Source: Podarcis melisellensis (Eukaryota). From it: a stretch of DNA of 64,000 nt. How positions within the stretch are numbered: the stretch's first letter is position 1; the number at the start of each line of letters is the position of its first letter. Both the position numbers and the translations under genes were made by a program. The stretch lies in the NCBI GenBank assembly GCA_964234715.1, contig OZ174277.1, one strand, 5' to 3'. Positions 1 to 64,000 of the stretch are shown here, piece by piece. Under the pieces are notes generated by a model. That model saw only the letters and a list, made by a program, of their open reading frames with translations. It was not told the DNA's origin and searched no databases.

Positions 1-1472
1 GGGAAGCAACCAGCCTACAAGAACAGTTAAAAAAAATGCAGGAACAATTCCTTCAAAAGACAAGAGAAGAAAAAGAAAACCATCTGAAAATTCAAAGACT
101 GAAAGATGATTTAGCAGATAGCAATCACTTAGTGGAAAAGTTAAAACAGAAGGTTGAGGAGCTTTCTAGATGGAACAGTGAGACCAAAATAATGATGACT
201 GAAGTCCGGACTGATTCAGAGAAGATAATTCTTGAAAGACAAATTATTGACAGAAAAAATGATGAATTAAAAGCCCTGGCTGAAGGTTTCAAAGAGCAAC
301 TACGTATCACAAACGAACAACTGCACAAACAGATAATACTTGAGCAGGAGCACTTGGATCACATCAAGAGATTAGAAGATGAGCTAATAAAAGCAAAAGA
401 ATTAGCCGGTGAATTTAAGCAGAAATGTGACAGGGACAATGCTTATAACATGAATGCAGAGATGGAAATAAGAAACCTACGTACTCAGATGAGCACATTC
501 ACTATGGAAATGAAGATGAACGAGCAGAAGGTCCAGCAGCAGCAGTCCCATATCCATGAGCTCAATAGCAAGATGAAGAAGCTGCAAGATGACTTGCATC
601 AGAAGACCTTGGAGGAACAAATGGCACGCCAAAATGTGGCTTTACTTCAGGAAGAATCAATTGCGTTCAAGCATTCTGCAGAAGAGTTTAGGAAGAAATT
701 TGAAAAACTCTTGGAAACTCACAACATAGCGGAAAATGACATATCTGGTATCAGGATGGAATGCATCACCCTGCAGCAAGAAAACCACATGGCTCAAGAC
801 AACATTAGAATGTATAAACTTCAAATTGAAGACCTGCAAGACAGACTTCAGAAATCCCGTGAGCAGCTTCAGCAAGGCAAGCATGCAGAAATGGAGTATG
901 TGCAGAAATACCGCAAAATGGAAGAAGAGTTACAAATGCAGAGGCGGACAGTAGAGAACTTGAAGCACCAAATAGACCTGCAGAAAAGAGATCACGGCAA
1001 TCAGCTGCGTTGGTTTCAGAATGAGATCAACAAAAGGAACATCCAGTTAGACTTTGGGTGGAAGGGAAATGGCTTTAGTTACTTGGGAGACACCTCCCCA
1101 AGAGATTTTGAACATATTAACCTCTGTACGACCACATCTCCTTTATTAAGAAGGAGACACCTAAGTGGCTCAAGTTGCAAATCTGAACCGCTGGTTGCAC
1201 AGAAGTTGCAAACAGTTGCCACTGATTCATTGCAACGAGAGAAGCCGTTCCAGTTGTCCGGAGTAACCCACCAACTGGAAAATGGAATAAGTCAACAGTC
1301 CTATGCCGAATATGTTTCCCAGACAAGCACAGAGTTTGAGATAACGGTTGATAAGAGCAACCCTATCACAAGAATTTCAGAAATAGATAAATTGAGAGAC
1401 GGCAAACTCCTCAGTTCCAGGCTTGAAGAGAGTTATGAAGTGGGCTTAGGGAAGCGCCTGCATCCATTGGAG
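1..1472 (+). CDS. DST: Dystonin BPAG1e (BP230)-specific coiled-coil rod exon, 5'-truncated by the window edge
   Basis: Frame open from nt 3; heptad-rich E/Q/K/L sequence; YVSQTSTEFEITVD..NPITRISEIDKLRD resembles the BP230 rod end; phase-0 donor GAG|gtacat at 1472/1473. Confidence 0.9.
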
Positions 1473-2586
1473 GTACATGGCACATTTGATGGCGTTTGAT
1501 ATTGCTTGGGTGTTGTTGTTACAACTTTCTGTTCTCCTGTAATCTTCATTGCTTTTCTGTTCTATTTCTATGTTTTCATCTTATCTGATATCGAACACTT
1601 TCTTACATCTGGCACGCATCAATCCGCATTATAACCCCAAGACATTTGTGCAGATGCAGAAGTTGCTTGCATGTGTGGAAGCAAAAATTTCACTCACCAA
1701 CACCCACCAAAAGGTTCCCCATTTGTTTAAAAGAGGGGGCCCTACATACCGAAGAGCACACTTCTCTGCAAAATGGTGTTTGCCGGATAAAAGAGCAGGC
1801 AGAATGATGTGTCTTTACACCGTTCTCTGCCCACAGTTGTCCCCACACCCTATGATTTCAACAAGACATGAGGTGGAGGCAAAAAGTATACTTCTAACCT
1901 TAAAAGCTCCCCATCCAACTGCCGAATGATTTTTTTGTGGCCTACAGAAGTCCAAGATCTCTCTTAAGTATTGTACTGCACATACAACAGGCCTGGCTTC
2001 CTAGAATGAAGAAAGAAATTCACAAATCCAAGTTGTTCACATCCGCATTAGATTTTTTAAAGTGGTACTTGGACCAAAAAGGTGCAGTCTCTCATTTCGC
2101 CCAAAGGAGTGACCCTGTTCAGGGTTCTCTCAGCAGCTCCCTCCAAACTGGCCATTCCACTCTTCCCATGCTGTGTTTTGTTTTTCTTTTCCAGCTGCAC
2201 TCTGTATTCCATAGCTACTGAGCATGCTCTGAGCATTGTCTCCTTTGAGTGTTTGTTTGGTTTTGCCCCCTTAGGTTTTAATATATAGTGCTTCTGTGAA
2301 TCTTGGGGATTTCCTGCCTTCATTCACCACCTGAGTTTGCAATTAGAAGGGTGATGATATTGCTAAGAGATAGTTTCTCTTTTTACACTTTGCTGTCATT
2401 CCATCCCACTTTCCTTCTCAAACCAAATTCCATATTGCCAGGGTTAATAAAGTTTGCTGATTCTTAGTGTTTGCTGTTCATATTCTGCATCTCTCCCCCT
2501 CTCCCTGTTTATGGGCTAGATTAATAACTTGATGCTATTTTCTAAGTACAGTATCCTTCATTATGTCAAACAATTCCTATTTACAG

Positions 2587-4377
2587 AATCTCCAAAATGA
2601 AGATTTATCAAAGATCAGTGCCATCTTAGAGGAAAAGCAAGCCAAGGAGGTTGCTCTGATCCCCTCTGAATATGATAATATCAAATTTCAAGGTCTCCGG
2701 CATGATGTAACTGCCAAGCAGTTGATTGAAGTTAAACTTCTAGACCTGAGCACAGCTGAACAGCTTCATTCAGGAAAGAAGGCCATTGCTGAGGTTCAAA
2801 AAAATCTTGAGAATTTTTTGACTAAGCCTACTGCAATAGCTGGGTTGTATATTGAATCTAGTAAAGGGAAGGTCTCATTTGCTTCTGCAGCTAAGCAGAG
2901 AATAATTGAAAAAGCATCTGTGTTAGCACTGCTTGAAGCCCAGGCCGCCACTGGTTTTATCATTGACCCCACAGCAGGTCAGAAATACTCGGTTGATGAT
3001 TCAGTTGCCAAGGGACTTGTAGATCATGAATACAAAAGCAGGCTTCTCGAGGCAGAAAAGGCAGTTTTAGGATATCTATTTTCTGGGAAAAAGCTGTCTG
3101 TTTATCAAGCAATTGAAACCAGAATCCTTGAAAGGCAGAAAGGCAAAAGTTTTATTGAAGCTCAGATAGCAAGTGGAGGTATTATTGATCCTGTGAGAAG
3201 TGTCCGTGTGCGTCCTGAAGTTGCGGTCCAACTGGGCTTGCTGAACAACACCGTTCTGAAATTTATATATGAACATTCCAGTAATAAAAAAGTCTTCCAG
3301 AATCCAAATAATAGGCAAGCCATGTATTATAATGATTTGCTGAAGCTGTGTTTACTTGATATCGGAAGCAAATGCTTCCTGCTCCCTGTTGGGGAGAGAA
3401 AAATAACCACTCCGTCTGCAGAAAAAATTCATAAAATATCTGTGGTAGATATTACAACTGGAGCAGAAATGACCTCCTACGAGGCTTATAAAAAGTCCCT
3501 GATAGACAAAAGTACCTACCTCCAGCTGTCAGGGCAAGAATTTCAGTGGAAAGAATCTACATGCTTTGATCACCATGGAAATTCTTACCTTGTGCTGACA
3601 GATCTAAAAACTGGGATGCAGTTCAACATTGACGAGGCATTAACTGATGGCAAAGTTGATAGAATGCTGGTCAGTCAATACAAGGAAGGGCAAATCACAG
3701 CCAGCGAGCTTGCGGATGTTTTGTTGAGCAATTCTAAACCACGCACAGATGTCAACAGCCCCATTGCTGGTGTCTGGCTGCCCGAGACAAATGAGAGAAT
3801 GCCTCTTCTGAAAGCTGCTCGCAAAAACCTAGTGGAGAGAACCACGGCACTGAGGTGCCTTGAAGCACAAGCAAGTACGGGAGGTATAATTGATCCCTTT
3901 ACTGGGAAGAGATATAGTGTGGCAGAGGCCTTGCAAAGGGAGCTGATTGATGAGGCGTCTGCTAAGCACGTCCAGCAGTGTGAACTGGTCTTTACTGGGA
4001 TTATTCACCCTGTAACAAAGAGTGTTCTGTCAGCCGTTGAAGCAATGAACACAAATGTCCTAGAGAAAGAAATGGGCACTCGCTGCCTAGAGTATCAACA
4101 TCTGACTGGTGGATTGATAGATCCCAAGTCTCATTGCAGATTATCGATGGAAGAAGCTATTAAAAGGGGCATTATTGATGCCGTCACTGCTACAAAGATG
4201 AAAAATGACAAATTCTACTTAAAAGGTATTACGTGTCCCAAGACAAAGAAGAAATTGACGTATAAAGAAGCCCTTGATAATGCAGTTTTTGACTGCCACA
4301 CAGGGCTACGATTGCTAGAAGCAGCTGAGCTCATTTCCTCAGGAATTTCTAGTCTGTATTTTTCCTCACAGTCTTAA
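2587..4377 (+). CDS. DST: Dystonin BPAG1e terminal exon: two plakin-repeat (intermediate-filament binding) domains, stop TAA
   Basis: Acceptor ttacag|AAT in phase 0; KFQGLRH, LLEAQAATGFIIDP, CLEAQASTGGIIDP plectin repeats; C-terminus KLTYKEAL..FDCHTGLRLLE..SGISSLYFSS typical of BP230. Confidence 0.95.
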   Translation, partial: NLQNEDLSKISAILEEKQAKEVALIPSEYDNIKFQGLRHDVTAKQLIEVKLLDLSTAEQLHSGKKAIAEVQKNLENFLTKPTAIAGLYIESSKGKVSFASAAKQRIIEKASVLALLEAQAATGFIIDPTAGQKYSVDDSVAKGLVDHEYKSRLLEAEKAVLGYLFSGKKLSVYQAIETRILERQKGKSFIEAQIASGGIIDPVRSVRVRPEVAVQLGLLNNTVLKFIYEHSSNKKVFQNPNNRQAMYYNDLLKLCLLDIGSKCFLLPVGERKITTPSAEKIHKISVVDITTGAEMTSYEAYKKSLIDKSTYLQLSGQEFQWKESTCFDHHGNSYLVLTDLKTGMQFNIDEALTDGKVDRMLVSQYKEGQITASELADVLLSNSKPRTDVNSPIAGVWLPETNERMPLLKAARKNLVERTTALRCLEAQASTGGIIDPFTGKRYSVAEALQRELIDEASAKHVQQCELVFTGIIHPVTKSVLSAVEAMNTNVLEKEMGTRCLEYQHLTGGLIDPKSHCRLSMEEAIKRGIIDAVTATKMKNDKFYLKGITCPKTKKKLTYKEALDNAVFDCHTGLRLLEAAELISSGISSLYFSSQS

Positions 4378-6189: not shown

Positions 6190-9100
6190 GTATTAAAACA
6201 CTGCTTGAGAATAGATGCTACCAGATGCATGACACAGTGTTGTTTTATCTTTAAAGTGCCAAATGTGGCACAAGAACATTTCATTGTATTCAGCTTATAT
6301 TTTACTCAAAGAAAACCCATTGAACTTCCTGGACCTAAGTTAGTCACGCCTATTGATATCAATGGGTCTGCTCTGAGTAGGGCTGGCATTGGATACAACC
6401 TTCACTTTAAAGTGCTTAAGAACAAATATAATTTACATACTAGCGTTTTTATTTAAATTCACCAGACTACATAACTAATACATGGGTGTTTTTTCCTGAA
6501 AGACTACATTCAAGACAAAAAGGAGAAACAGTGTTTGGACAATAATATTCCCTACTTATGACGGGAAATGATAATACCTTCATTCCTTTCCCACCAGGTG
6601 TTCCTGGCTAGTCCTTTGGGTGTTAATATGGAGGTGTAATTTTTTTATAAGTTACAGGAGTTGTCAACCTTTGAGGCCCATTCAGAATTCATAGAGTGTG
6701 TACTATGGGCATGATCCATTTGTTTTTTTAATCTCTTCCAGGTCAGCACATGCTAACCCCCCCCAAAGTTCTTTTACATGGGTTCTAGGTAAAAGCTTGT
6801 CTGGTAGAATAGAAACAATCCTCCTGAATTTGCATGAGTTTACATGGGATGCTGCCCACAAAAACCTATCAGATTAAAGCTTACAGTAATAGGCTATATT
6901 AAAAATCACAAATCTGGCGTTTGCTAGTATCACAGAAATCTGGATCCAAAGCACTGCTCTTCATATATTTTCACAGTTTTTACAGAGGATCACAGCAAAA
7001 CTATCAGAGTAGACGAAGAGGTGGCACACGATTTAGTTATGGTTTTGCAGGGATCTCCTGCAGTCAACAGCCACAAAGCTGGCACCAGATCCATGATTTT
7101 CATGGTTTAGACAGTGGCAACAGATGTGACATGTGATTTGATGGTGGTTAGGTAGGAGAAAATAAAAAAACAGTTTGGAAAGGATCATTTCCCCCACTTC
7201 CTGACTCCTGTAGCCTCCCCATTTTCTCCCACTGGCCACTCCCATTTTCTTCCTTTCAGTCATCCCCATTTCCCACCTAACCAGGTGCTGAATTGAACCT
7301 GTAGAACTAACAGAGGAAATGGGAAAGAGAATGACTCTTCTTGTTTCCTCCTTCAACTCCATTGATGTTTCAAGAGGGAACCTCATGATGAAGGGGGCAG
7401 TGAGACAGGGTGTGTATCAAATTCTTCATGGGCACAAGGGGGCATTCTCAAGGCCACCACTACCTTGGAAACTCCAGGGACCTCATAAAACCCAATGATT
7501 ATAGGCCCAAATCACATTGCTTTCCCCAATTTATTAGGGAGTATCAATCACACAATTTAAGTTTATTATATTTTACGCTACACACACACACCCCATTTCC
7601 AAATGTTACACTGTATTCAAATAAGAGGTGGGGGGGGATATTGGAGGCTGAGTAGAACCTGAAATCTCACATCTGCCAAGCGTGTAAGAGTTAACCTCCG
7701 AACCAAACCCTTGAAATCTGCAGTCAGTCCTGTACCAGCAAGTAATTTGAAGAACTTAAATGATACAATATTTTACTGGTCCCATTGCATGATGCCGAGA
7801 AACTCTTCAGTCTTTCATACTTGTGCCTAATATAACTGGACATGCATGTGTCCACATGCATATTAAACACATGGAGAAAATGCTACACATGACATTACTC
7901 AGCGTAGTTTGTCCTTGAGTGCAAGCTGCTGCTTCCAAAAAATGCCAGGACAATCGGTGGGCAATCTAGATCTGGAACCCTGGCTGTGGGTGGAGTTTAA
8001 CCTGTTGCCCCTCCTATGTTCCTGATCTTGGGGGACCCCCAGTATGTGGAATTTGCATTGGAGGAAAAGATCTCCCATTGTTACGGACAGATGTTCCCCC
8101 ACTCTGCAAATTGCAGACACATGGTGAGATCCAAATCATGGTCCCAGCATGAGGCAAAAGGTTAAATACTGCTCCTCCCCCCCATCCATCTCACCACGGT
8201 CCCATTCTGAATTGGGCTTCCTGTCCTGGCAATTTGTGAAAGAAAAAGCTTGCAGACAAGTACAAACTGCCTGGTAAATTGACACGTATCTTTTGGTGCA
8301 TTTAATTGTATGATTTCCAGAGAAAATTAGCACCAAATAACGAAACACTTTTATATTTTCATTAGAAAAGCCCTTGCTTGCAGTTTTTTATAGATACAAA
8401 AAAGCCACTTACTGAAATCCGCCTCATCGTCATAACGTACAGTGACTAAGAAGCAGTTTTAAACCCCAGGGTTTGCATTCCCTCTTCACCATGAGGTTAA
8501 AATGGGCCACCTGTATCACACGGCAATCTTTTTCTTTCTGTCTAGTTCCTGTAAATTGTGGCTTACCCAGTATGCTAAATAGCATTTGTAAGGGGGCTAT
8601 CTTGATTATCTGTATCCATCGTAGTATAGAGTAGCTCCAAGGTGCAGAGATTGTGTGCACCAGCAGAACATTTTCACGTGACTTCTGTGAGCAATTATTG
8701 GGTGGTGCTCACAATGAGTAAGACTTCTTCCGGTACTCAGAACAATTTTGGAACTATTACAACAAGGTGATGCATTTTAGTTTAGTATATCAAAGCATGG
8801 TTCCATGCCCTGTATCCATATACTATGTACCCCATGTAGCACTTTCAAAAAAGAAATCTGAAATAGACTAGACCAGAATTAATCTGATTAGATTCACTTC
8901 TGTCAGTTCTATGGGATAAGAGAAAGCAGGGATACACTTAAGAATTGGGAACCCTCATGGTTGAAAAGGTGTGTGTGTGTATAAGGCTCATCCACATTTT
9001 CAGCTCTGGTTAGAGTTGGCAATCTATAACTTTTATCCTTGATTTATGGAGAGTTGCATTTAATATTGTTTGAGAACTCCTGGTTTGGAAATACTTGAGA

Positions 9101-11877: not shown

Positions 11878-14800
11878 GAGGATAAAGTTATAGCTGGCAT
11901 TATTGATCAAACAACTGGAGATATGTTTTCAGTCTTGCAGTCAATTTATAAAGGCCTTATTGACTATGACACCGGAATTCAGTTGCTTCAGAGCCAGCTC
12001 ATTTTATCAGATATAATTTCACCAGCCCTGGGAAGAAGTTTTGACCTTGAAGAAGCCAAAGCCCATGAACTTGTTGATGACCAAGCTGTATTGCAACTAC
12101 AAGGTTTACAGAATGCTAAAATGGTCATTTCAGAACTGCAATCAGCAGCACTCCCAGTTGTAGCTGCTTTGGAACAGGGTTTAATTTCAGAACCTCTTGC
12201 TATTAAAATTCTTGAGATTCAGCTTTCCAGAGGACACCTAATGATACCAGCCACGGGAGAACAGCTGACTTTGCACAGAGCTTTTCAGAAGAATCTGATC
12301 TCTGCAGCATTATACACTAAACTCCTGGAAAGACGTGACATGAGCAAAGACCTTATTGACCCCAACACTGCAGAGAAGATAACCCTTGAGGAATTGCTTG
12401 AAAGAACTGTAGTACATAGAGAAACAGGCTTGAGGCTCTTGCCTGTGACCCCTCAAGAAAGAGGCAAAATAACACTAAAATGTGGAAGGAAGATAACTAT
12501 TCTGAGAGCAGCTCATGAAGGACTCATAGAGAGGGAGACCATGTTCAGGCTCTTAGGTGCCCAGCTGCTTTCTGGCGGCATAATTCATCCTGATACAGGA
12601 CACAGAATGACTGTTGAAGAAGCAATGAGAGAAGGGGTTATTGACCAGGATGCTGCTTGTGCTATTTTGACTCATCAGCTTCAGACAGGTGGGATCTTGT
12701 GTCCAAATTCATCAAAACGTTTGTCTGTAGATGAAGCTGTGCAGTGCAACCTGATCTCTTCTAGTAGTGCTTTGCTGGTACTACAGGCACAACGAGGCTT
12801 CATTGGACTCATCTGGCCACATAGTGGGGAAATATTTCCTGTATCTACATCTTTGCATCAAGGCATGATCACTAATGAGCAGGCCTGCAAAATTCTAAAG
12901 GGGCGGCAAAAAATCGCAGCACTCTATATTCCAGAAACTTGTGAAGTGATCAGCCTGGATGATGCAGCCCAGCAGGGAGTCATAGAAAGCAACGCTTCAT
13001 CAATTTTGAACAGTGTTACCCTACCTGATGAAATGCCTAATGTGGAAGATATACCGTTGCCTTTGAAAAAAGCGGCAAGATGGCTCTCGTCTTGTGAACT
13101 CCAGGCATCCAACCAACATGCTGATGGGAAGGATGTAAACACTTCTGACACCAGTGAGCCCATACCTTGCCACTCGGAACAAACTCAAAAGCTATTCATG
13201 TCTTACCTAATGATAAATAGTTGTATGGATGCGAACACCGGTCAGAGGCTTTTGTTGCATTGTGGTGACTTAAATGAAACAGTCAGCCTGTTAATGGGTG
13301 GCAGTCGTTCTGAAAATAATACAAATGAGACTGAGGGGCAATTGTGTTTAAACACAAAAGCACAACATATTGAGCAACAGCCCAAAGGGGCAATGTTTAG
13401 TGATCTCACTAGCAATGTTTCAGAACAAGATACAAGTATTCAAAATATATCCAGCAGCAATAAGAGGGAGGCATTTTGTAAAGATCACCAGAATGACATA
13501 GTCTCAGGGAGAAATGGTTTTCATATTGTGGCTCGTGCTTCAGAGCAGTCAGAATGTGTCACGAATAGATCTGGAAAGGAAATCAATCCAGGTCAAAATC
13601 TTGAAAAAGAAAATGCACTTGGAAGTTTACTGAAACTTCCAGAACAAATGCCAGTGGAAGGGTATGAAAATTTAACTGACCAAGCAAACGCTGAAAATGC
13701 TGAAATGAAAACATCTGTTTCAAACTGTTCACAAGGACACCTTCCTCCAATAGTAAATGAAGATAACATTTGCATAGTAGAGGGGGAGAACATTAAGGGG
13801 AGTGAAAACGACTCCCCAGGCATCTTCAGTAGTGTTTTGGATGCAAATTATTCTTCAGCTATTAAGAAAGATGAGAAAGCTCAAGCAAGCACTAACGTTT
13901 CACATCTCATGGACAACAGCCCGCAAAAATGCATGCCTCAGGTTTTGCAGATTGAAGAAGGCATTATGCTAATGAAGAACAATGTGAAAGATGAGGTAAA
14001 AGATGACTTTCAGGATAGTTTATACACTAGTATAGAACCTGACCAAAAATGTTTAAATGAACGCACTAAGAAAGAATTAGAGACTTGTAATGAGAGTGGA
14101 GTATTGCAAGCGGAAACGAATGTCACCCCAATATTGCATAACATTGATGATAGGAATGGCAAGTTGCCATTAGAAGACCACTCTATAATGCATGGTGCAT
14201 GTCTTCATATGAATGATAGGCCACCACGAGAAGACATTACAGATAGCTATGGCAATTCACAATTGGAAGACCATGCTAATAAATTTGCTGGCTGTCTATT
14301 GGAAAACTACACCAGCATACAAGATGCATTACCATTGGAAACTAGAGTGCATACACATGACAGTCAGTTACTGGAAGATTGCACCAATAACTATAGCATG
14401 TCAGTCCTAGAAAATACTTCTAATGGTGATTCCCTCCTGGAAGACACTGTAAATTTGATCCATGGATTATTACAGGAAGAACAGACTGAAAGTGGGCAAC
14501 CTGTAGAAAATCAGATGAATATCAGTGATGGAGAACAACCCATAGATAAGGCTAATATATGTAGTGTATCTTTGCTTGATGACCATACCAGTTCTGATGG
14601 CATTGCACTGTTGGAATATCATACTGTAGATAAATATATTGGACCAATTCAGAGAAACGGTGCTATTACTCATGCTGGATGTCCACTCAAGGATTCCATT
14701 GATACAAATGCTGGGCTCCCAGTAAAAGTCACTACTGACACTCTCGATGGGTCATCCATTAAAATCAATACTGATAGTGAGTCCACATCACCTCTGGAAG

Positions 14801-17547
14801 TCAGTGCTAGTATGAAGCATGATGAACCACCTGTGAATGACAGCAAGTCAACATTTGAATGTGGCTCGCTAGTTCTGGAAGGCAATAACAGCAAGCAATC
14901 TGAGCTGTTGCATAAAAGAGAACATAGTACTCAGTCAGAAGATCCTTGTGATCCAACTCAACATAAAGATCGCAGTGAAACCTGTGATGCTCTGCAAATT
15001 GATCATAACAATGGTACAGTATGTAGCTCAGACAGAATAAACAAAGGTGACTCCTCTGTTGTTAAAGAAGATGCTACTCCAGAGCTCGTCCACAGTGCAG
15101 TAGCCATCAATGGAGTAGCAGACGAGTTGCAAGAAAAAGCAAAATCTTCCACGGGCAACCTAAGTAAGGAAGAAGAATGCATTCTGTGCTTTAGTGAAAC
15201 AAGTGACTCTGATACACTTGAAATTATAAATATGGCAGCATTCAATGCAAGGCTACTAGGCACAATTCTAGAAGACAAGGCAGAAAGCAGTAGAGATATA
15301 GAAGATAATGGTCAGAAAAAAGAAAGGGAAGAAAGTAAAGAGATTGACAGCTCCCTGGAAAAGTTGGATGAAGCTAAAATGCAAAGAGGTGAGCACAAGG
15401 GCATTAAAATGAAAGAAGATGACTCTGAGAGTGAACATGAAAGCATATGTATGGATGACAGTGATGATGATGGCAGTGGCAATAGTGATGATAATGGCAG
15501 TAGCGATAATGGTGACAGTGGGGATGATTTTGAAGGTTATGATTATGTGGATTTTGATTATGATACTTATGATGAGACAGATTATGAAGATGAAGAGGTA
15601 TTGGAAATGCATTACTCTCAGTGCCATGATAAAAACATTGGGGTCCAGGTGTCTGCACTTTCAGAGGCAACAGGAAACAATGGTTTACAGTGCCCTGAAA
15701 GCTACAGTGCTAATGAATATCAAAATTTAGCTGATGTTGTTAAAGAAAACATTCAGGACCTACCATGTAAAAGTAAAGAGGGAAGCCAGCAAGAAACAGA
15801 ACAGGCTTCTGACCCTTTCATGCAAGACAACCTTGCATTACAGAACAGTCAAACCTCCCAATTAAGCATAAGCAATGGTGCAACATCAGAAGACGCAATT
15901 GGAACAGAAAATATTAGTGCCAAGTCTGATATACCTTCTCAAAGAAACTTACACGCTGAACACAGGGAAGCTAAAATTCTTGATGATATATCAATGCCAT
16001 GTTTGAATTGTGAGAAAAGACAAGAAGTAGATAATGGAAAACAAGCATCTACCAGTATGCCACATAGTCAAGTAGAAATTGGTGCGCTGAAACAAAATAA
16101 AAATGGAGTGTGCATTCTGAAGGAAGATCATATCCAGGAATCAAGTGGAAGCCTTAGGGAGCCTTATTCATCAGTTATTAAAAATGGTTATGAAATTACT
16201 GCCTCATATGATGAAAAAATAAGTATTGCTCAAACTTCAAATAAGCCCACATTGGTTACAGACTCCAATGGCATTGCTAAAGATGAATCAGTGCACTATG
16301 TAGAGGGGTTTGACCTCTCTACTTATTTAAAACAAAGTGCGAAAGATATAATGGCCAAGGATATCTTAGCAATGAGAGAGAATGGTTCATCTTACCTAAA
16401 GGAAGGTGAAAGAGACAGTGAAGAGAATAGAGAGGAGCTAGTGGTATCAGGAAGTGGAAACTGCGAGGGAAAACAGCACCTAAAAGAATTGCACCCCAAA
16501 CAACAGCTGTTTCCTTCATCAGTTGTATCAGAACCCACAAGAGATAAAGTTAGCAGAGAGGCTAGTGCTCATTCCAAGGTGTATCATGATGAAAGCTACA
16601 AATGTGATTTCAACAATATGGAGCGTGTTGAAGCTATTGGAAAAGTAGGGAGCAAGGTTGATGAAACAGCTTCTGGAGAAGATACATGTGTAATTGGATC
16701 TTCTTATAGTACTTTAGACACCAGAGATGATAGCCAGAATAGCTATGAGCAGAAAGCACATGAAGCAGAGGTCACTCAAAACAGTAGTTTGGGGAAGCCT
16801 ACTGAAGATGACATTCTAGACCATGAGCCTACTTTCTCTCAAAATGGCATCCAGATAAAAATGCAGCAATCACTAAAAGATGTGATGCTTTCTAATTCTG
16901 CCCCAGTCAATGATCAGGAAGTTGTTTTTCCTGAAGTGCCTCCCATATTACCTAAAAGCTTAACAAAAATACTTAAAGGAAATATAAAAGATGTTTACTG
17001 CAAGCAGGAAGAGGAACCTTTAAGTTATATTTGCACAAAAGCTTTAATGCAAAATTTACTTAAAATGGTTGATAGCACACACTGGGAAAACGAGGACCCT
17101 GCCAAATCTGCTGTCCAACATAGAAGTGAGGATACTAGAAGTGCCTCAATGGCTGCTTCGTTGTGCATACATGCAAACGAACCTAATTCTAACCCACCTA
17201 TTTGGCTTGATAATAGAAGTCCTGATCTCCTCCTCGATATACTGAAACAAGACCGCTGCAGTCAAAGAAATGAGAACACCCGTGAGACAAGGGACATGAA
17301 GGCCCAGACAGAAAGAGAGCAGCAGAAAAACGCTTCTCAGCATGACCATGCCTTTCCCATCTCAAGAGAAACTACAAGTTCATCAGGATTAAAAGCAGAA
17401 ACTGCTGGAGAGAGTACTGAAGCATTCAGTAAGGCTCTTGGTTCGAAAGGATACCCTCAGCCCGAGAAGCCATACCAGCAACCAAAAAGCTTCTCTGAAA
17501 CCTTGGAAACAGAGGACTCTGGACCAAGACCTGATTCAAAGAGCATG
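11878..17547 (+). CDS. DST: Dystonin BPAG1b-type giant exon (1890 codons): central plakin-repeat domain PRD2 followed by a long acidic/Ser-rich disordered region
   Basis: ttttag|GAG GAT AAA GTT (EDKVIAGIIDQTTG) ... ATG|gtgagt; plectin repeats e.g. RAAHEGLIERETMFRLLGAQLLSGG; 5670 nt, phase 0-0. Confidence 0.95.
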
Positions 17548-17878
17548 GTGAGTAGCAACTTACAATTTTTGTCTTAAGTAAAGACACGTAAAACAAATGA
17601 AAAATTTATTTAGTTCATTTTGGTGCTTTTGCTTGTTAGCATAATCAAAACATGGCACCTATATTACCAGTATGCACTGAATCACCTATCGCAAGGAATT
17701 GAATGTCCTCTGGTTAACATCATAGTAGAATCACAGATGAACATTTAAATTGCATCTCCAGGCTTTTTTTTTTTAAAAAAAAAAAACCCCACACATCGTC
17801 CTTTTTGTTTTTAAAAGTGATTTCCTGCTACTGTGTTGATAAGTTCTAGTTACACTAAAATGACAATAATATTTTCAG

Positions 17879-25876: not shown

Positions 25877-26019
25877 GTTCTTTGGCAACCATTTAATATT
25901 TATTTTAAAATAGCTCATTGCTATTATTTTTCCTTGCATGTGAATGCTGACCATCCCAGACAATGTCTGAATGTCTGACAATGTTTGTGAATGTCTGAAA
26001 ACTCAAGGAATTGATTGTC

Positions 26020-26021
<2 letters not shown>

Positions 26022-26068
<47 letters not shown>
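26022..26068. repeat. (TAT)n microsatellite
   Basis: Direct read; explains the spurious poly-Ile and poly-Tyr ORFs. Confidence 0.95.
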
Positions 26069-50358: not shown

Positions 50359-51833
50359 GCAATCACATTGAGCAACTTCAGTCAACTTACGTTAGTTCTC
50401 ATCAGTTCCAGCAAATGTCTAAGGACTTTCAGGCCTGGTTGGACAAAAAGAAGGAAGAACAGAATCAGCCTTGTCCCATCTCTACCAAGCTGGAGTCTCT
50501 GTGGACATTAATTGATGATCAGAAAGAGTTCAAGGCTGCCTTGTCTGACCAGACTGGTTCTTATGAAAAAATCATCACAGAAGGCGAAAGTTTACTCCAA
50601 AAGACTCAGGGAGCAGAGAAGGCTGAGCTGCAGGCCCAGCTGAACTTGCTCAGAGTTAACTGGGATGAAATGAACAAGCAAGTTAAAGAAAGGCAAGATA
50701 AATTAAACGATTGTTTGGAAAAAGCCCTTAGATACAGAGAGCATGTAGAAAACCTACAACCCTGGATAGCGAAATGCCAAAGCAATATCTCTCAAATAGA
50801 AATGAGCATAGATCCTGCTCGGCTAGAGAATTCCATCGCTCAGGTGAAGAGCTGGCAGAAGGACCTAGACAAACACCAAGGGTTGGTGGAGCTATTAAGT
50901 AATGCAGCTGAGGCATTACTCAGTGCCTGTCAGACAGACAAAGACATTATTGAAGAGGAGAAGACACTGCTGATCCAGAACATGGATATAGTCACAGAAC
51001 AACTGCATGCTAAAAGAGATGGTCTGGAAAAGATGTCTCAGAGACTGAAAGAGTTTCAAGAGTCATCAAAGGACGTTGAAGAGCAGCTGAAGAATGCCAG
51101 AGAACAGCTGGAAACACACGATTCTCTCAAACCCCAGACTTACAGTAACAAACACTTGACGATTATGCAGGCTCAGCAGAAAACACTCCAGGCCGTGAAG
51201 GCTCAAGTGGACCTTACAAAAAAGCTGGCCCAAGAACTGGTGGCAGATGCTTCAGATTCATCAGGTGTCTCTGACCTCTTGTTGCAGGCAGAAACATTAG
51301 AAGAAGAATTCAGCACCATCAGTCAGCAGGTTGAAGATAAATGTTCATTCCTGGAGACTAAACTCCAGGGAATTGGCCATTTCCAAAACAGCATCCGAGA
51401 GATGTTTTCTCAGTTTGCAGAGTTCGACGATGAATTGGACAGCATGGATTCTGTGGGTAGGGATCTTGTCACACTGCAGTCACAGCGAAAGGATATAAAA
51501 ACTTTCCTGAAAAAGTTGGAGGAACTCATAACCAGTAATGAAAATGCAAATAATACCTGCAAAATGATGCTAGCAAATGAAGCTGAAGCTTCTCCAGATC
51601 TTGCAGGTATAAAAAGGGACTTGGAGGCTTTAAATAAGCAGTGCAACAAGTTGCTAGATAGAGCAAAAGCCAGAGATGAACAGATTGAAGGGACTATTAG
51701 CCGCGTTGAAGAGTTCTACAGTAAACTAAAGGGGTTTTCTAAACTGCTTGGGGAAGTTGAAGAGCATGAAGAGTCCCAGGGGTCTGTTGGAATGGAAATT
51801 GAGACGATAAATCAGCAGCTGAACGTATTTAAG
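50359..51833 (+). CDS. DST: Dystonin large spectrin-repeat exon (GNHIEQLQS...[29 protein letters not shown]...NVFK)
   Basis: ctgcag|GC ... AAG|gtaaga, 1475 nt, phase 1-0; the next constitutive exon lies beyond the window. Confidence 0.95.
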
Positions 51834-56015: not shown

Positions 56016-59000
56016 TTGTATTGGGGTACTGTATATTTATTTATTTATTTATTATTACATTGTATATCCCACCTTGCCTCCAAAGAGATCAAGGCAGCAT
56101 AAAGCTCCCCCCCTCTCCATTACCCTCACAACAGTCCTGTAGGCTAGCCTGAGAATTGGTGACTAGCCCAAGGTCACCCAGTGAGCTTCATGACCAAGTG
56201 GGGATTTGAAGCTTGTTCTCCCATGGCCTAGCATGACACTCTGATTTATTTGTTTATTTATGAAAACACTCAGCATGTTCATTCCATGTACATTTTATCT
56301 AGAACATCTTTGGGTTGTATTCACTTAGTCATGCTTAGAGTAGACCCACTGGAAGCGAACGGGACTTAAATCAGTTCTAAAGCCCTGTTGATTTCAATGG
56401 ATCTACTCGTAAGCACGACTAAGTCTGGATCCAATTTGCTTGGCAGAATGTGTTCATCACATGCAACAATGCATTTTGGCAACAGTTGCACACAGAGCTT
56501 CACAAATCCCTGTTGTTGGACTACAAAGATTAGTCTCTTTCTTTGTCTTTAGCATCCGATTCAGGTTATGTGAGGGCAACTTGAATGGGTTTAATAGCAC
56601 ACTTCTGAAGGTCCTTTCAGAAGGACCTCTCTATTTCTTGAAGATATGCACCTATGTTTGCAAAAAGAAGAAAGACAGCTTTGTATTATTATTTCTATGA
56701 ACCATTCTATGAATGGTTACAATGGGGGGGGGGAACGAACAAGGGCTAAAATGTTTTGATTTGAAAGATAGCTAAATTGATCTTTTAATCCACTCCTTGA
56801 CGATACCTGATGGGTATTTTTATATGTTTTATTACAAATACTGTGTGTTTTAAATTTTGTTTCCCCTCTCTGATTATTTGGGGGGGGGGGGGTTCTTGTG
56901 TTTATTTTGATTATGCATTTTGTGTTTTTATATTGTGATTTTATCCTGTGAACCGCCCTGAGACCTGTGGGTATAGGGCGTTTGTTTAATTAATTAATTA
57001 ATTATATTATTCCTAATAATCTGTATTATCTATTTTTATATATTTAAATGAGTTTTAAACCATGCTTCATTTACAAATAAGAATATGAAAAGTGGTTCAC
57101 ATTATCCACTTTATCCATTAATAAGCCAACAGTCAACCACAAAAGTGCGGGCTTCTTTCAGACAGTGACATGGTTTTCACGCCACACTAAGACAAACCAT
57201 GTCTTAGTGCAAGTGTGCAGCTCCTGGAGAGGAGATAATGGTCATCTTGCTGCTCCACAGTTGTTTTGCTGCTGCACCAGACTGAGCTAAGCCATGGTTT
57301 GACTTGGCCTGTCATCTTAATTTGGGCTTGTGGCATGTCTCTCTCCAGCATAATCATGATCTGTAACCAAGGTGTTTCCTGTGGACGACCACCATTTGAG
57401 GCAGAGACCTAGCTTTTTGGTCTCCATTCCTTGTTTTAGCAGTAGTCTCCAGTGAGGGGTTGAGGGTATGTGTATTGCTGTTGTCCATAAATGCACCATC
57501 TCCTGGGACACGCTATCAGAGGGTCTGTACCTGGTGCTTGGCCAAAGAAGCAGACTGGGATGCTGCTGGTCTATCAACTACCCTGTTGCCCAGCAGCATG
57601 CTTGATCAAGCTAGTCAAGGTAGTCTCTGGACTACTTCAATATCCATTAGAGGCTGCCACTGTATTGGCTGAGCTCAAGATTTAAGGATTTAAGATTTGA
57701 TGGTAGTCTTTGCCCCAAATGACCTGAGGGATGGACTGAGGTTGGGTGTGGAAGTGCACTGCTTTGTCATGGTCCGATCATTTCCTGGTATAGTTTAGAT
57801 TGGTAGCAACAATTTCCTGACTGGCAGTTGCCATTAGAAGTTTTGTGGCCAGGTACCATAAGTATGCTGGTGTCACTCAGCCATAACATCTGAATTAGGA
57901 GCAGTTGCGCATGCCTTGGAACAGTGCCTGGACCCAGTTTTAGCTTATTGATGTCTTTACTTGTTTTGAATGTTATAAATACTTGTTTTTAGTGATTTTT
58001 TTTACTGTTATTGTTACTGGTTTATTCTTTTTGTAAACCGCTCTGAGGTTTTATTATAATCAGTGGTATATAAATGTTGTGAAATAAACAAACAAATATA
58101 CATGACGTGCAAAGCAGACCACTAAGTAATAGTAAAGTAATAAAGGTCAAGTGGTAGTCCCAAGCTCATTGGAGGAAGGGAATAGCAAATTGGAATTGCG
58201 ACTAGTGACTCTGCTTTGAAATCATTAACAAGAACGGTGGTCCATAGGCATATATTTTTACAATTAACAGTAGTCAGTCCACTTTTAACAAGTATTGCTT
58301 TTGGGTAGCTGAGAAGAAGATTGTCTGCTTGTAGTTCTTATATCTTATCTATCGGTATTTACATAGAGAAAAGAGGATTTTGTTTTGTATTCAGAAATCC
58401 TACCCAAGAACAAATCTTCCAGTGTTTCCATTTTCAGTTACTTACAGTAGCTGGCATATTGTATTTCATGGTGTTTCTCTTTCATTCTCTCACTTTCATT
58501 CAGTTTTATTGTAGACCTTTGTGCTTTAAAGAAAGTACGCATTGAATGAACGTGGGCAAAAGAAAAATTCAGCAGATGAACTTGCTTTACTTGGGTTACA
58601 CCATGCCCATTTCCTCACAAAGAGCCAACCAGCTAAGATGATCCTGAAAAACAAAAGCCCTTGTTTAGTTTGTATTTTGCTGAACATTTTAATGAGCTAC
58701 TTCATGCTAGGGTGGGGTTGTGGGGAAGCAGCGTTCAATCTCTGCCACGTAATTACAATCCTTGAAATGTCTGCAAAATATTTCAGCCATAAACCTGCCA
58801 CACTCTTTATTTATTCTTTTATTTATTAAAGCACATGGATTTATGTCAGTTTCTATCACTGAATGGCTCATTAAATCCCCTCCCCCATTTAGACCATTAC
58901 TAGATGCGGAAAGGGTCGTTTCAGTATATTTCCAGTGTTCAGATATATGTCAAGAGGTGCCTTCTAATTGCGCTTCATAGGAGATCTGGGCCCGGATGAA

Positions 59001-60699
59001 TATTCCAGTTGATGAGCTTGAACTAATATTTAAATTGGTTTAGGTCGGTGTCGTAGATGGTGGCCTCTTACCTTGTTGATTGAATCAGTGCAATGTGTTA
59101 ACTCTTCCCTGAAGTACATGGTTTCTTTTCACAGGCGCCTTCAAAAGTAAAATTATATTTTCTTGCTGCATCAACTTCAATATTTGCATCTGTTTTGCAG
59201 CTTAAATATAAAATGAAAAAAAGAATAATAATTTATTATCACTACATTAAAGAAAAAACTCGACATACATTTGGGGTGGCTGTCTGCATACAGACCTTAT
59301 CCTTTGTCCAGAGCCCTCTGTATATTCTAATGCTCACATGGAGCTCCTTTACAGATGGTCTTCCCCATTCATTTAAATGGAAGGAGTAGCTGCGTGTGTC
59401 AGTTCAGGTGCTGCCTTGGACATGTACAGTGCCTGTTCAACAAATCCATGCTCAGCTGACTATAAATACATTCTGGGTTGGGAGTGACAGACTTCCTTCA
59501 AAGGAGGGTCTTAAGATTGATTGTCATTCCAGTACTGACCCATTTTGCTGCTTGAAGCAGAGCCCAAATAGTGTCTCCTGCCCCCCATCCAGGGCCACTG
59601 TTTTGAAAACACTTGCTGCACTTTATTTGGGAATATCCTTTGTGGCACACAATAAGATTTAGTTTGGAGTAGTGAATATGTATGGCAATGGACTGCCAGA
59701 AACTTCATTCCTGTCTGCGACTATCCCTTCTTATAGTGCTGCCTTCCCAAGGGAGGGGAACTTTTTCTGCTGTAGTTTTTGTGTATGGTTTGTTGTGACT
59801 GCAGCTTGTGGTATGAAACATTGTCTTTTTAGTGGGACATGATTGTTGTTAACAACGTGGGCATTTTTATATGTAGATATGCTGGTATACATATGGCAAA
59901 TAAATTAACAATCCACCAGCCTTTAGAAATGAGCTGCTCTCCTTGCTCTGTATTATTTTTACTCTTTTTAGTGCTTTAGCTATTTATTTTATTAAAAATA
60001 TAATATGCCTTCCATCTAAATAGATCCAGAAACAAATAAGTAAAACTAGTCATGCTATTAACTCAATATAGTGTGGTTTTTAGGAGTACTGTACTGGGTG
60101 AGATTTTTGAAAAGTTGCAGCACTTCTTTGCATGTTGGGATTTGCAGTTGTCTGAGAGCCAGGAAGTGTAAAAAAATATCAAGCAAATCCCTTTTCATTG
60201 GATTAACTGGATTGTGAATGAAGAATGCATTCTGTAGTCATTCAGAGAGACCAATTTGCCGGCTAAATCCCTAATTATAGAATATAATGTACATGTGTTA
60301 CAAATATAGAGCAAAGGATGCAATCCTATGGAGATTTTTCATGGGGCTTGCTCAGAAGTAAGATCTGGCTGTTAATTAAAATTGATTTATGGTGATGGTG
60401 GAAAGTAATTCAATTTGATTGAATTCTTATTATACAGCTGGTTAGTTTAGTTTATAATGCTACATACCATTAAAAGTGACCATCCACTATATTCAGATTC
60501 CTGTTAATCTGCATAATTTGTAAGTACTGGATTATTATTTTTGTTATGAAGCAGAATAAGTGCAGTTTGTCAGTGTTTTAGAAGGGTCCTGGGTAGTCTG
60601 GTCCATATTTGTATGGTGTCAGGTTACCTGGTTAAGCAACATGTAGTAAATTTTTGACATTTTGAACTAATTAGCACCGGTTTTTCCATTCTGCTTGTG

Positions 60700-61300
60700 A
60701 GCCACCACCCACCCACCCTCTTTTCCTCCAGAATTACAGAGCACAGACTCCGATATGCAGGAGTGCTGCAGACAGGAACTTGCTCCTTTGTGCACCTCCC
60801 CCTGAAAAGGCTCAGCCTCGTTCAGAGACAAGACAAACAGTAAAAGTGAAAGATGGCTAAGTAAAGTCATGTGGGGCAGGAAGCGTAAGGGGGAAGAGCT
60901 AAGAGGTCAGGCACCTCCTAATGCTCGGTTGGAATAATACTCAGGGAACGAATGCGATAGGAGCAGATGTTGCCTAAAGAATAGCAAAGGGCGTTTCTTT
61001 TAAGCTCACTATTGGGAGGGATGCCTGTCAGACCATAAGAAACCAGGGAGAGCCGGAAAGCTTATCAGCTGCGCTGGGCAGGACATGTGAGCGTTTATTG
61101 TTGTGAGCTCTTTTTCATGCCTTCTTCGCTACAGCTGCGCTTCAAGACGGAGATGAAAACAGTGACCACGCTCTTTTAGCCACCGTTTATGCCAAAAAAA
61201 AAAAAAGGCCTGCTGAATTTAAACAGAATGTGAATCTGTTGTGCCTTTGTGCCGGAGTGGAGGAAGAAACGCTGTAGTTTCCTGCTGTGTTGCCTTAAAA
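60700..61300 (+). promoter_or_regulatory. Putative internal promoter / 5' region for the KIAA0754-like exon
   Basis: About 15 CpGs in 60880-61280 in an otherwise CpG-poor window; no recognisable repeats; two CAGCTG E-boxes; about 1 kb upstream of the ATG. TSS not visible. Confidence 0.4.
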
Positions 61301-62256
61301 CAGGACAACAACTTTCAAGGAATGTGTTCTGCGAGTGAAACTGGGGGGAAAGTTTCTTTTTCTACTCATTCTGTTCCGTTGCTTTTTTGTATTATTATTT
61401 CATTGGTCTGGCTCCTCAGAAAACTGTTGTGTTTCCCATGGAACTTCTGAACGCGACACAGAGAAGCTTTAAGGAAGCAAGGAATAAACTGCCTTTTGAA
61501 TCGAGGTTATTTATAGCTGCTGCCAAAAAAGGGGGAGAAAGCTTCTTCTTTTATTATTATTATTATTACAACTCTGGATATACCTTTGTTTTTCCTGAAG
61601 CCTTTCTCTGTGCCTTGGTCTCCACAGTCCACAGCTCTTCTGGTTTCTTTTTCTTCAAAAGCGTCCACAACATGGCTTATTTATAAAGGAGATGGAATTC
61701 TGCAAGCCATTTAAATGGATTACAGTTAATCTGTCACCTCCTGAATATAGCGTGCTGCCTGCTATAATGCTGATTCATTTTGAAGACTTAATCTGGAGAT
61801 TTAAGACACACATTTTGACCTAAAAATTGAAATGGAATGCTATGTGGGAAGTTCTGAGTCTTTTGAGCCACTTAAAGATTTTCCTGGGGTTTGGGGGTTT
61901 GTACATTTTGTTGGTGTCTTTGTGCATTGAGTTAGTATTTTAAAATATTAAAAGGTGTGGGGTTTTTTTGTTTCCCCTCTCCCCACCCCCTTAAGCTCAA
62001 GCACTTTATATTTTAGGGGCAGGGGGAGAAATGTTTTAAATCACAGCCAGGTAAACTTACACAGATGCACTGATTACGACCTTAACCGCCTCATAAATTA
62101 TTTCCTGTGTTTTAGTATGTAAGCATCTTTCTGCATTTACTGTACTTTTTAAAAACTGCTTTTCTATTACTTTATTTTAATTTTTACTTTATGTGTGTTG
62201 CGTGTCTCCAATAAGATAGCCTAGCAGCAGTGCTAGACCTGTTAATTCCTGCAGAA

Positions 62257-63546
62257 ATGGGGAAGCCGCTGAGCAGGCCAGACTGTTTACGCCAGAATCC
62301 TCCTTGTGTAGGAAAAGGTGATGAAGAAGAAGAGGATATAAATATTGAGGACTGTTATGTTCCCCAGAGGTCAATCTATGACACAGTGCGGCTGAATGAA
62401 CAGATTGACTCAGGTTCTAAAGGCAGCCTCTCTTCCAGGCATTTCTCAGATCGGACTTTGCCGTATAGTCATAGAACACTGGACCTTAGTACATTGTGCT
62501 CCAATGGTGCCCTCTCCTCCTCTAGTGTCTTTGAACTCAGAGGACGGGAAGCCAATAAGCTAGATGAAAAAATGATCTTTGATGCCCTTAAGCTGAACAG
62601 TGACATCATTCGAACAGCTGGCTTGCCCAAAGCAAAGTATCACACAGAAAAGAAAGAACATAGGAGATCCTGGAGGATGCTTGTCCCACCAAATTTTGCA
62701 GACTATGGAAATAAAAGTGAGTGCTCACTTGCTGGGACTGTTGATGTGTCCGACTTAGCAGCAACAGGCCAGGTCAAATGTGGGACTAGTTCTCTAACTT
62801 CCGAAGAAGACGACTCTGGTCTGTGCAGTCCTCCAGCAGAAAGAGAAGAAAAACAAGATGTGCTAGAAGGGGAACAAACTCAATTTAGGAGCATATCTTC
62901 CATAGACGATAATCAGTTTGTAGGTAAATTTGGATCATTTTCTCCTACCATTTCTAGTAGTGAACATCAAATTTCATTGCTTACCTCCAGAAGTGCCCCT
63001 ACCAGTGGACACTGTCGAGTAAAATTGCAGAATGCTTTACATATAGAGCAAGAACCTTTCTGGAACTATAAGGGCAACCAAGGGGAAGGAGATGGACATT
63101 GCAGTCCACTGACATATTTGAAAGAAGACCTCTTAGCACTACCCCAATGGCTCCAGGATGGTGAGAGGGAACATGATTTCACTTTAGACAAAGAGGAAGT
63201 GAGGAACAGCGCTGAAGCCAATGAGCCATTAGACACCCAAGACAGGATGATTGAAAAGGACCTCCTGGATATTTCAACTCAGGATATAGATATTTATGAT
63301 GATGATGCAGCAGCTTTACATGCTAGTGATAAGGACTTAGTAAAATATGTGATTTTGCATGAAACTGAGGAAAGTAATATGGCCCATACAAGTGCAATAG
63401 AATTGTCCTGTCAGGCTTTAGAGGCTAATAATACCACATGCTGTCAAAAAGCAAATCCAATCAGCGCTGAATTCAGCTTTTGGACTACAGGCATGCAAAT
63501 AGAACAAACCTTGGATACAGTTTGCAATGGCATGTTGTCTTATAAG
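62257..63546 (+). CDS. KIAA0754-like nested coding exon; probable alternative first coding exon of a short dystonin isoform (430 aa)
   Basis: Strong Kozak gaaATGG; MGKPLSRPDCLRQNPPCVGKG..IEDCYVPQRSIYDTVRLNEQID..KLDEKMIFDALKL..RRSWRMLVPPNF matches my recollection of the N-terminus of MACF1-nested KIAA0754; phase-0 donor AAG|gtaatt at 63546/7. Confidence 0.8.
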
Positions 63547-64000
63547 GTAATTCCAAACTTAAATGCATTCTTTTCATGCTGCAGGGTGGGTTATTTTTTA
63601 TTATTTTTCTTCTGTAATTGCATCATGAATGCTTATGTTTAGATTTTGCTAATCTACCCAAAGAGTTCCTTTAGAATCATTTGCCCAACAAGTTATTAGA
63701 AGGCAGAAATTGGCGAGATGGTCACTTCAGTAAATTGATTAAGGGCAGTTTGTGACAGGGTTGATTGCTTCCAGCTGTTTGGTTGCATGGCTATTTATTG
63801 CCCAGATGGTGCCTGTTACCCTTTATTTGGAATGCGTCCACTAGGCATTGATGTTCAGCACCCCCTCCTCCCCTCCTCTCAAATTATGTTTCAAGCAGGC
63901 AATGCCATTCAAGGGCAGATAGGCCTTCCCTATTCAGATTTAACCAGATTTCAGCTGCAGCCATATACTGTACACACTTTCATGGGAGTAAGGCCCATTA

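Follow-up and report, generated by a model that had tools for sequence, protein, structure and literature searches.

The short dystrophin isoforms Dp260, Dp140, Dp116 and Dp71 are produced from internal promoters and begin with unique first exons. Within the spectraplakin family, a 2017 spectraplakin review lists potential myristoylation and palmitoylation sites in the classical dystonin leads (isoforms 1, 2 and 3 of BPAG1a/b), describes D-type isoforms of Drosophila Shot without the actin-binding domain, and mentions a conserved extra exon common to dystonin and MACF1. This extra exon is probably the KIAA0754-like first exon of dystonin (DST) and MACF1 considered here. Papers on dystonin mutants count isoforms a, b and e with leads 1–3 only and leave out the short product, and no functional study of the dystonin or MACF1 (KIAA0754) head, or of the short isoform, was found in the searchable literature.

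Closest to the present case are about 25 public protein models named 'dystonin', 2,100–2,750 amino acids long and distributed from fish to mammals (Phrynosoma, Pseudonaja, two turtles, Haliaeetus, Rhinolophus and other bats, whale, beaver, Sus, bear, meerkat, monkey and many fish), whose residue 1 is the start of the 430-codon exon described below. Nested in the dystonin gene of Podarcis melisellensis, at positions 62257–63546 (+ strand) of the 64,000-nt stretch of DNA analysed (the window), is an open reading frame (ORF) that is very probably the coding part of an alternative first exon of this short dystonin, used in Podarcis as in the other species. A preliminary description made from the letters of the window had presented the exon as hidden, which was overstated, and had added that a predicted isoform may already be in databases, which is the case. 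Exon and short isoform are already known from public annotation and are not a discovery; experimentally they are uncharacterised.

Dystonin occupies the + strand of the window, with rod and plakin-repeat exons at 36–4377, the giant plakin-repeat exon at 11923–17577 and, after it, spectrin-repeat exons up to 51833. The last of these upstream constitutive exons has its 3' end at 51810–51833 (+), reading ...NQQLNVFK/gtaaga (the slash marks the exon end here and below), in phase 0. About 10.4 kb past this point is the ATG of the ORF (62257–62259), in a good context with G at both −3 and +4, followed by 430 sense codons that end in phase 0 at AAG/GTAATT; both exons are thus in the same phase and can use the same downstream acceptor. 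The donor GTAATT (63547–63552, +) falls at the 63546/63547 boundary, right after AAG. An in-frame TAA at 62212–62214 (+), 45 nt from the ATG, shuts the frame to anything spliced in from upstream, and a TAG at 63640–63642 (+) is met only when the donor is skipped. Elsewhere in the gene, a long run of TAT/ATT triplet repeats lies in an intron at about 25990–26060 and appears as poly-Tyr and poly-Ile in the list of ORFs.

The stop-to-stop stretch around the ORF measures 475 codons and ranks fifth by length in the window, behind four stretches that belong to known dystonin exons; the one ranking sixth has 208 codons. Given the base composition and six frames, about 2 × 10^-10 open stretches of such length are expected by chance. 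A search of vertebrate proteins with the 430 residues returned 195 homologues. Identity to the head, as we call the product of these codons, is 80% in Elgaria, 71% in Pogona, 66% in a boa, around 61% in turtle and birds and 52–54% in the mammals elephant (54%), opossum and naked mole-rat, while in sturgeon, whale shark and teleosts the match covers the exon's first half. The same setting recurs in Elgaria, Pogona, Emydura and Pogoniulus, where the ORF is likewise nested on the gene strand; the host gene there encodes 7,800–7,965 residues and is identified as dystonin by its CH, plakin and plectin domains.

Codon substitution divides the exon into two parts. In the N-terminal module (codons 1–215; 62257–62901, +), of which the first ~170 residues are common with MACF1/KIAA0754, pairwise Nei–Gojobori dN/dS values are 0.03–0.16, and the whole module, residues 1–60 included, is nearly invariant from shark to mammals in the alignments. 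The C-terminal half (62902–63546, +) is variable but stays open at near-constant length and ends in a conserved ...LDTVCNG..S.K; its dN/dS is 0.28–0.55 across the pairs with an estimable dS, the window–mole-rat pair being left out of this range owing to saturated dS in that half. Exon length is 425–434 codons in all seven sequences compared. That the ORF is a chance opening, a pseudogene or a transposon remnant in an intron is hardly credible. Such an origin would fit the absence of any match between the 430 residues and Pfam or PDB sequences, as well as the predicted disorder of the head, but it is refuted by the chance expectation given above and by dN/dS values that have stayed far under 1 for some 300 million years or more, and it would leave the near-invariant first 60 residues and a position fixed in both dystonin and MACF1 without explanation. 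The preliminary description had put forward the ORF with its ATG and its phase-0 end, the phase match to the exon ending at 51833, and a syntenic conserved ORF with dN/dS below 1 in other dystonin loci; the first two are confirmed as written, and the last holds in the four sauropsid loci.

The end of the exon is conserved. A phase-0 end with an exon-final G followed by gtaat, the first five bases of the intron, is found in seven of seven species (AAG in six, CAG in mole-rat), whereas the read-through tails past the donor vary between species both in sequence and in length (2–70 residues). These comparisons indicate that the 430-codon ORF is a translated exon under purifying selection and that its functional 3' end is the splice donor. 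About 150–250 nt past the donor, at 63700–63800, is an intronic block with 83–93% identity among lizards and turtle and 60% identity to mole-rat; conservation there exceeds that of the exon's C-terminal half, and splicing control is a candidate role.

The same 3' end bears on the reading that the ORF is a stand-alone nested gene, in which the donor is ignored, translation runs to the stop at 63640–63642 and a free protein of ~461 residues never joins dystonin. Annotation gives this reading some weight: single-exon read-through models exist at NCBI and Ensembl for several species (in Elgaria, Pogona, Pogoniulus and elephant the NCBI annotation makes the ORF a single-exon gene of its own, with an 'uncharacterized protein' as product), the homologue matches include a 424-amino-acid human entry derived from cDNA, and the 2017 review leaves open whether the extra exon is 'its own isoform'. 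We nevertheless consider a stand-alone gene improbable, because the donor and phase are kept while the tails diverge; in addition, the full-length mRNA contigs described below are spliced, and the 454 nt past the donor in the window contain neither AATAAA nor ATTAAA. A minor unspliced product may exist beside the spliced one.

Joined directly to the head in all nine of the long or spliced models that were aligned (lizard, snake, turtle, bird, bat, pig, a Logan mRNA product, fish and naked mole-rat) is the next dystonin exon, beginning VFQKEEIEPLQ in most. In Podarcis this exon lies past the end of the window, and its position is known from other species: it is found 2.4–3.7 kb past the donor in Elgaria, Emydura and Heterocephalus, where it is preceded by a clean, pyrimidine-rich cag/GT acceptor in phase 0 and starts with a whole first codon. 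As it begins with a whole codon, it accepts either the exon ending at 51833 or the 430-codon exon.

The strongest evidence for splicing of this kind comes from four assembled mRNA contigs of 9–10 kb from non-primate mammals (L007–L010), which contain the head followed by the downstream dystonin structure. Three of them (L007–L009) come from three sequencing runs, are ~10 kb each, are 99.9–100% identical and carry an unbroken ORF of 2,690 codons; L010 has 9.1 kb and 2,636 codons. They represent spliced mRNAs, since the dozens of exons needed would not fit into genomic DNA of that length. Their heads are 71–74% identical to that of a New World monkey, the same as to those of other placental orders, so that the contigs are not from human or another primate. 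Of such mammalian Logan proteins the alignments took in two, both non-primate by this comparison; the two human entries among the homologue matches stayed outside the alignments. A search for squamate mRNA contigs of the long isoform gave genome-based models only for squamates, those mRNA contigs found being mammalian; one squamate Logan contig (L002) follows the genomic sequence to either side of the ORF and is hence uninformative on splicing. Splicing to a VFQKEE-like next exon without upstream exons, as the preliminary description had anticipated, is borne out in these other species by gene models (VFQKEE or VFEKEE) and by the mammalian mRNA contigs.

The contigs also bear on where the transcript begins. 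Nucleotides 105–2319 of L007 are collinear with mole-rat genomic DNA as one exon, from 929 nt before the ATG to the donor, and the sequence past the donor corresponds to the next three exons, at positions 8503, 10144 and 12945 of the mole-rat locus. In a comparison with the full window, L007 aligns to nothing but the ORF and a block at 61459–61797; it has no match to any of the upstream dystonin exons that the window holds, although downstream coding exons do align across the same evolutionary distance. Since upstream exons are absent from the contigs and the 5' untranslated region (5'UTR) is collinear with the coding part, these mRNAs begin inside the intron, with a single first exon. Their 5'UTRs measure 0.4–1.1 kb and extend without a break from the sequence immediately before the ATG. 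At the very start of the mRNA contigs, ~100 nt have no alignment to the mole-rat locus, and a short non-coding leader exon may precede the main exon.

Against this arrangement has to be set the reading that the ORF is part of an internal cassette or 'poison' exon, entered from upstream dystonin exons through an acceptor and bringing a stop into the message. In the window a good acceptor-like site, cctgcag (62248–62254), does lie 2 nt ahead of the ATG, but of the five sauropsids compared it is present only in Podarcis, being missing in Elgaria, Pogona, Emydura and Pogoniulus, and a phase-0 entry from 51833 would meet a stop after five codons. Nearly all homologous protein models match from their residue 1, and purifying selection over 430 codons would stay unexplained. 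We rejected the cassette as very improbable, on account of the Podarcis-only acceptor-like site and of the frame from 51833 that closes after five codons.

In the first-exon reading, a promoter inside the intron that follows the exon ending at 51833 would drive the short dystonin, with transcription starting roughly 0.4–1.1 kb 5' of the ATG. The first exon would consist of a long 5'UTR and the 430 codons, and its phase-0 donor (AAG/GTAAT) would be spliced to the next constitutive exon (VFQKEE...) past the window end. Conservation 5' of the ATG extends over ~800 nt to bird and mammal and ~1.75 kb to turtle. The conserved non-coding block at 61459–61797 (+), which matches the 5'UTR of a mammalian short-isoform mRNA contig, is presumably 5'UTR of the same exon in Podarcis.

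Two segments of this upstream sequence are candidates for transcriptional control. At 60800–61100 (+) is a block with 78–95% identity among sauropsids (lizards and turtle) in which G+C (0.47–0.48) and the CpG observed/expected ratio (0.57–0.68) are raised above the surroundings; as it sits about where a 5'UTR of 1.0–1.1 kb would begin, it is a candidate internal promoter. The second, at 61600–61800 (core 61668–61735), ~500–600 nt before the ATG, is conserved from lizard to mammal nearly as well as the coding head and contains an invariant TTATTTATAA at 61677–61686 that reads as a TATA-like or MEF2-type (YTAWWWWTAR) site. This block is located inside the 5'UTR of L007, and the 5' end of L010 is ~90 nt downstream of it, so that two start sites are possible; the block is a candidate for a second promoter or for an element that controls expression in particular tissues. 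Farther upstream, an intronic block at 58742–59131 (core 58941–59045) aligns to Pogona, turtle (65%) and bird (71%) and has no spectrin-like ORF; it is possibly an enhancer.

The presumed 5'UTR is rich in upstream ATGs, with 16 in the window between 61140 and 62256 and 13–14 in the longer mammalian mRNA contigs (L007, nt 1–1023), none obviously conserved as an ORF. Their number suggests that translation of the short dystonin may be regulated, weak or inefficient.

The predicted product would have ~2,600–2,700 residues, comprising a disordered 430-residue head, at least 14 spectrin repeats, two EF-hands, a GAS2/GAR microtubule-binding domain and a C-tail, and would lack the calponin-homology actin-binding domain, the plakin domain and the plakin repeats. 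The spectrin-repeat, EF-hand and GAS2 exons of Podarcis lie outside the window, and this domain content is read from orthologues: in two orthologous short products, one from Pseudonaja and one mRNA-derived, the Pfam matches comprise 14 spectrin repeats, two EF-hands and one GAS2 domain, and the same scan of the two gives no match to a CH domain, a plakin domain or plakin repeats. The domain composition foreseen in the preliminary description is therefore that of the orthologues. By this comparison the short product comes from a spectraplakin gene but is not a canonical spectraplakin, the actin-binding and plakin domains being absent.

The head itself is predicted by AlphaFold2 (72-sequence alignment) to be disordered, with a mean pLDDT of 45.9, apart from one helix at residues 104–112 (62566–62592, +), the sole predicted element of secondary structure; no fold emerges that could hint at what the head does. 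Given this predicted disorder, its conservation looks like that of a string of short linear motifs. The head starts Met-Gly-Lys-Pro-Leu-Ser-Arg-Pro-Asp-Cys, followed by an invariant block Asp-Cys-Tyr-Val-Pro-Gln-Arg-Ser-Ile-Tyr-Asp-Thr; the region around Cys33-Tyr34...Tyr41 is invariant and is followed by an Arg-Arg-Ser-Trp motif. Within a conserved acidic Ser/Thr stretch is Asp-Ser-Gly-Leu-Cys-Ser-Pro (62812–62832, +), of the DSGxxS type, in invariant or nearly invariant columns. This motif resembles a beta-TrCP phosphodegron and is conserved in dystonin heads, and the stretch around it is largely conserved in MACF1 heads too.

The first residues form a candidate acylation lead, Met-Gly-Lys-Pro-Leu-Ser...Cys10...Cys17 (62257–62319, +), in which Gly2, Ser6, Cys10 and Cys17 do not vary across 72 sequences drawn from both paralogues and hagfish. 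The lead as a whole would suit N-myristoylation with subsequent palmitoylation. Gly2 and Ser6 fit the positional pattern of N-myristoylation; Lys3, also invariant, does not fit PROSITE PS00008, which requires an uncharged residue at position 3. ARF6 and NCS-1 start Met-Gly-Lys and yet are myristoylated, so that position 3 of this pattern is not decisive. It is in our judgement an evenly balanced question whether the invariant lead carries an N-terminal myristate and palmitate and so anchors the microtubule-binding tail at a membrane. A report of MACF1 myristoylation (PMC4200515) was set aside as support, as it concerns an internal glycine generated by caspase cleavage and not a KIAA0754-type N-terminus.

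The paralogue MACF1 has a counterpart of this head. Residues 1–170 are 52% identical to a Hyaena 'KIAA0754 homolog' (E = 5 × 10^-50), in line with the KIAA0754 likeness that had been proposed for the N-terminus. MACF1 models of 3,100–3,400 residues from fish, frog, snakes, birds and wombat start with a KIAA0754-type head; their precomputed Pfam annotation gives spectrin repeats, EF-hands and GAS2, in agreement with our own scan of the Bagarius model. Database names such as 'MACF1, isoforms 6/7' indicate that curated databases already attach KIAA0754 to MACF1.

Alignment of the short dystonin of Pseudonaja with the short MACF1 of Xenopus and Vombatus gives two collinear pieces, one pairing the heads and the other, with 62–63% identity, running from the first exon that the two share as far as the C-terminus; the junction at which the head joins is thus homologous between the paralogues. 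In hagfish, too, a model has a KIAA0754-like head followed by spectrin repeats. All weak head matches whose source was looked up are from fish, with no invertebrate among them. This arrangement probably existed before the DST/MACF1 duplication, and it appears to be limited to vertebrates. An internal start retained in both spectraplakin paralogues, as had been supposed, accords with the MACF1 head at the homologous junction and with the hagfish model. A broader proposal, which we hold more tentatively than that of an acylated dystonin lead, is that both spectraplakin genes of vertebrates possess an ancient, internally initiated isoform whose Gly2/Cys10/Cys17 lead is doubly acylated and which would act as a membrane-to-microtubule tether.

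If this is true, a membrane-anchored disordered head on a microtubule-binding spectrin/EF-hand/GAR tail would have a role separate from actin–microtubule cross-linking, and the invariant acylation-type lead offers a simple, testable hypothesis on where the protein acts. Purifying selection on the short dystonin is strong all the way from shark to mammals, yet this product is absent from the isoform counts made for disease and for mouse mutants. It should survive mutations or gene traps that lie upstream of the exon and be lost with C-terminal truncations; whether the short isoform is spared or lost could bear on differences between dystonin alleles, and the same could apply to MACF1.

Among known systems, the predicted short 'dystonin' isoforms of Phrynosoma, Pseudonaja, Haliaeetus, Rhinolophus, Sus and fish are orthologues with the same first exon, junction and domains; the Podarcis case shows no difference in kind and adds a further species. 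The KIAA0754 exon of MACF1 has in common with it the invariant lead, the first ~170 residues and the position in the gene, and its models are likewise of two kinds, a stand-alone protein and the head of a long product (here MACF1), but it comprises ~1,100–1,400 codons against 430 in dystonin and is not alignable past residue ~170. The classical dystonin leads are similar in being a set of short, differing sequences, supplied by alternative promoters, that may target the protein to membranes. They differ in lying at the 5' end of the gene, ahead of the actin-binding and plakin domains, whereas the Podarcis exon starts deep in the spectrin rod and drops both. Shot D-type isoforms are also spectraplakin products that lack the actin-binding domain through an alternative start; the dystonin head, however, has no relative outside vertebrates among the matches with a checked source. 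The short dystrophin isoforms likewise arise from intronic promoters in a giant gene of the spectrin family and keep the distal rod and the C-terminal binding domains, but they belong to another branch of that family, and their first exons encode few residues, in contrast to the conserved 430-residue head of the short dystonin.
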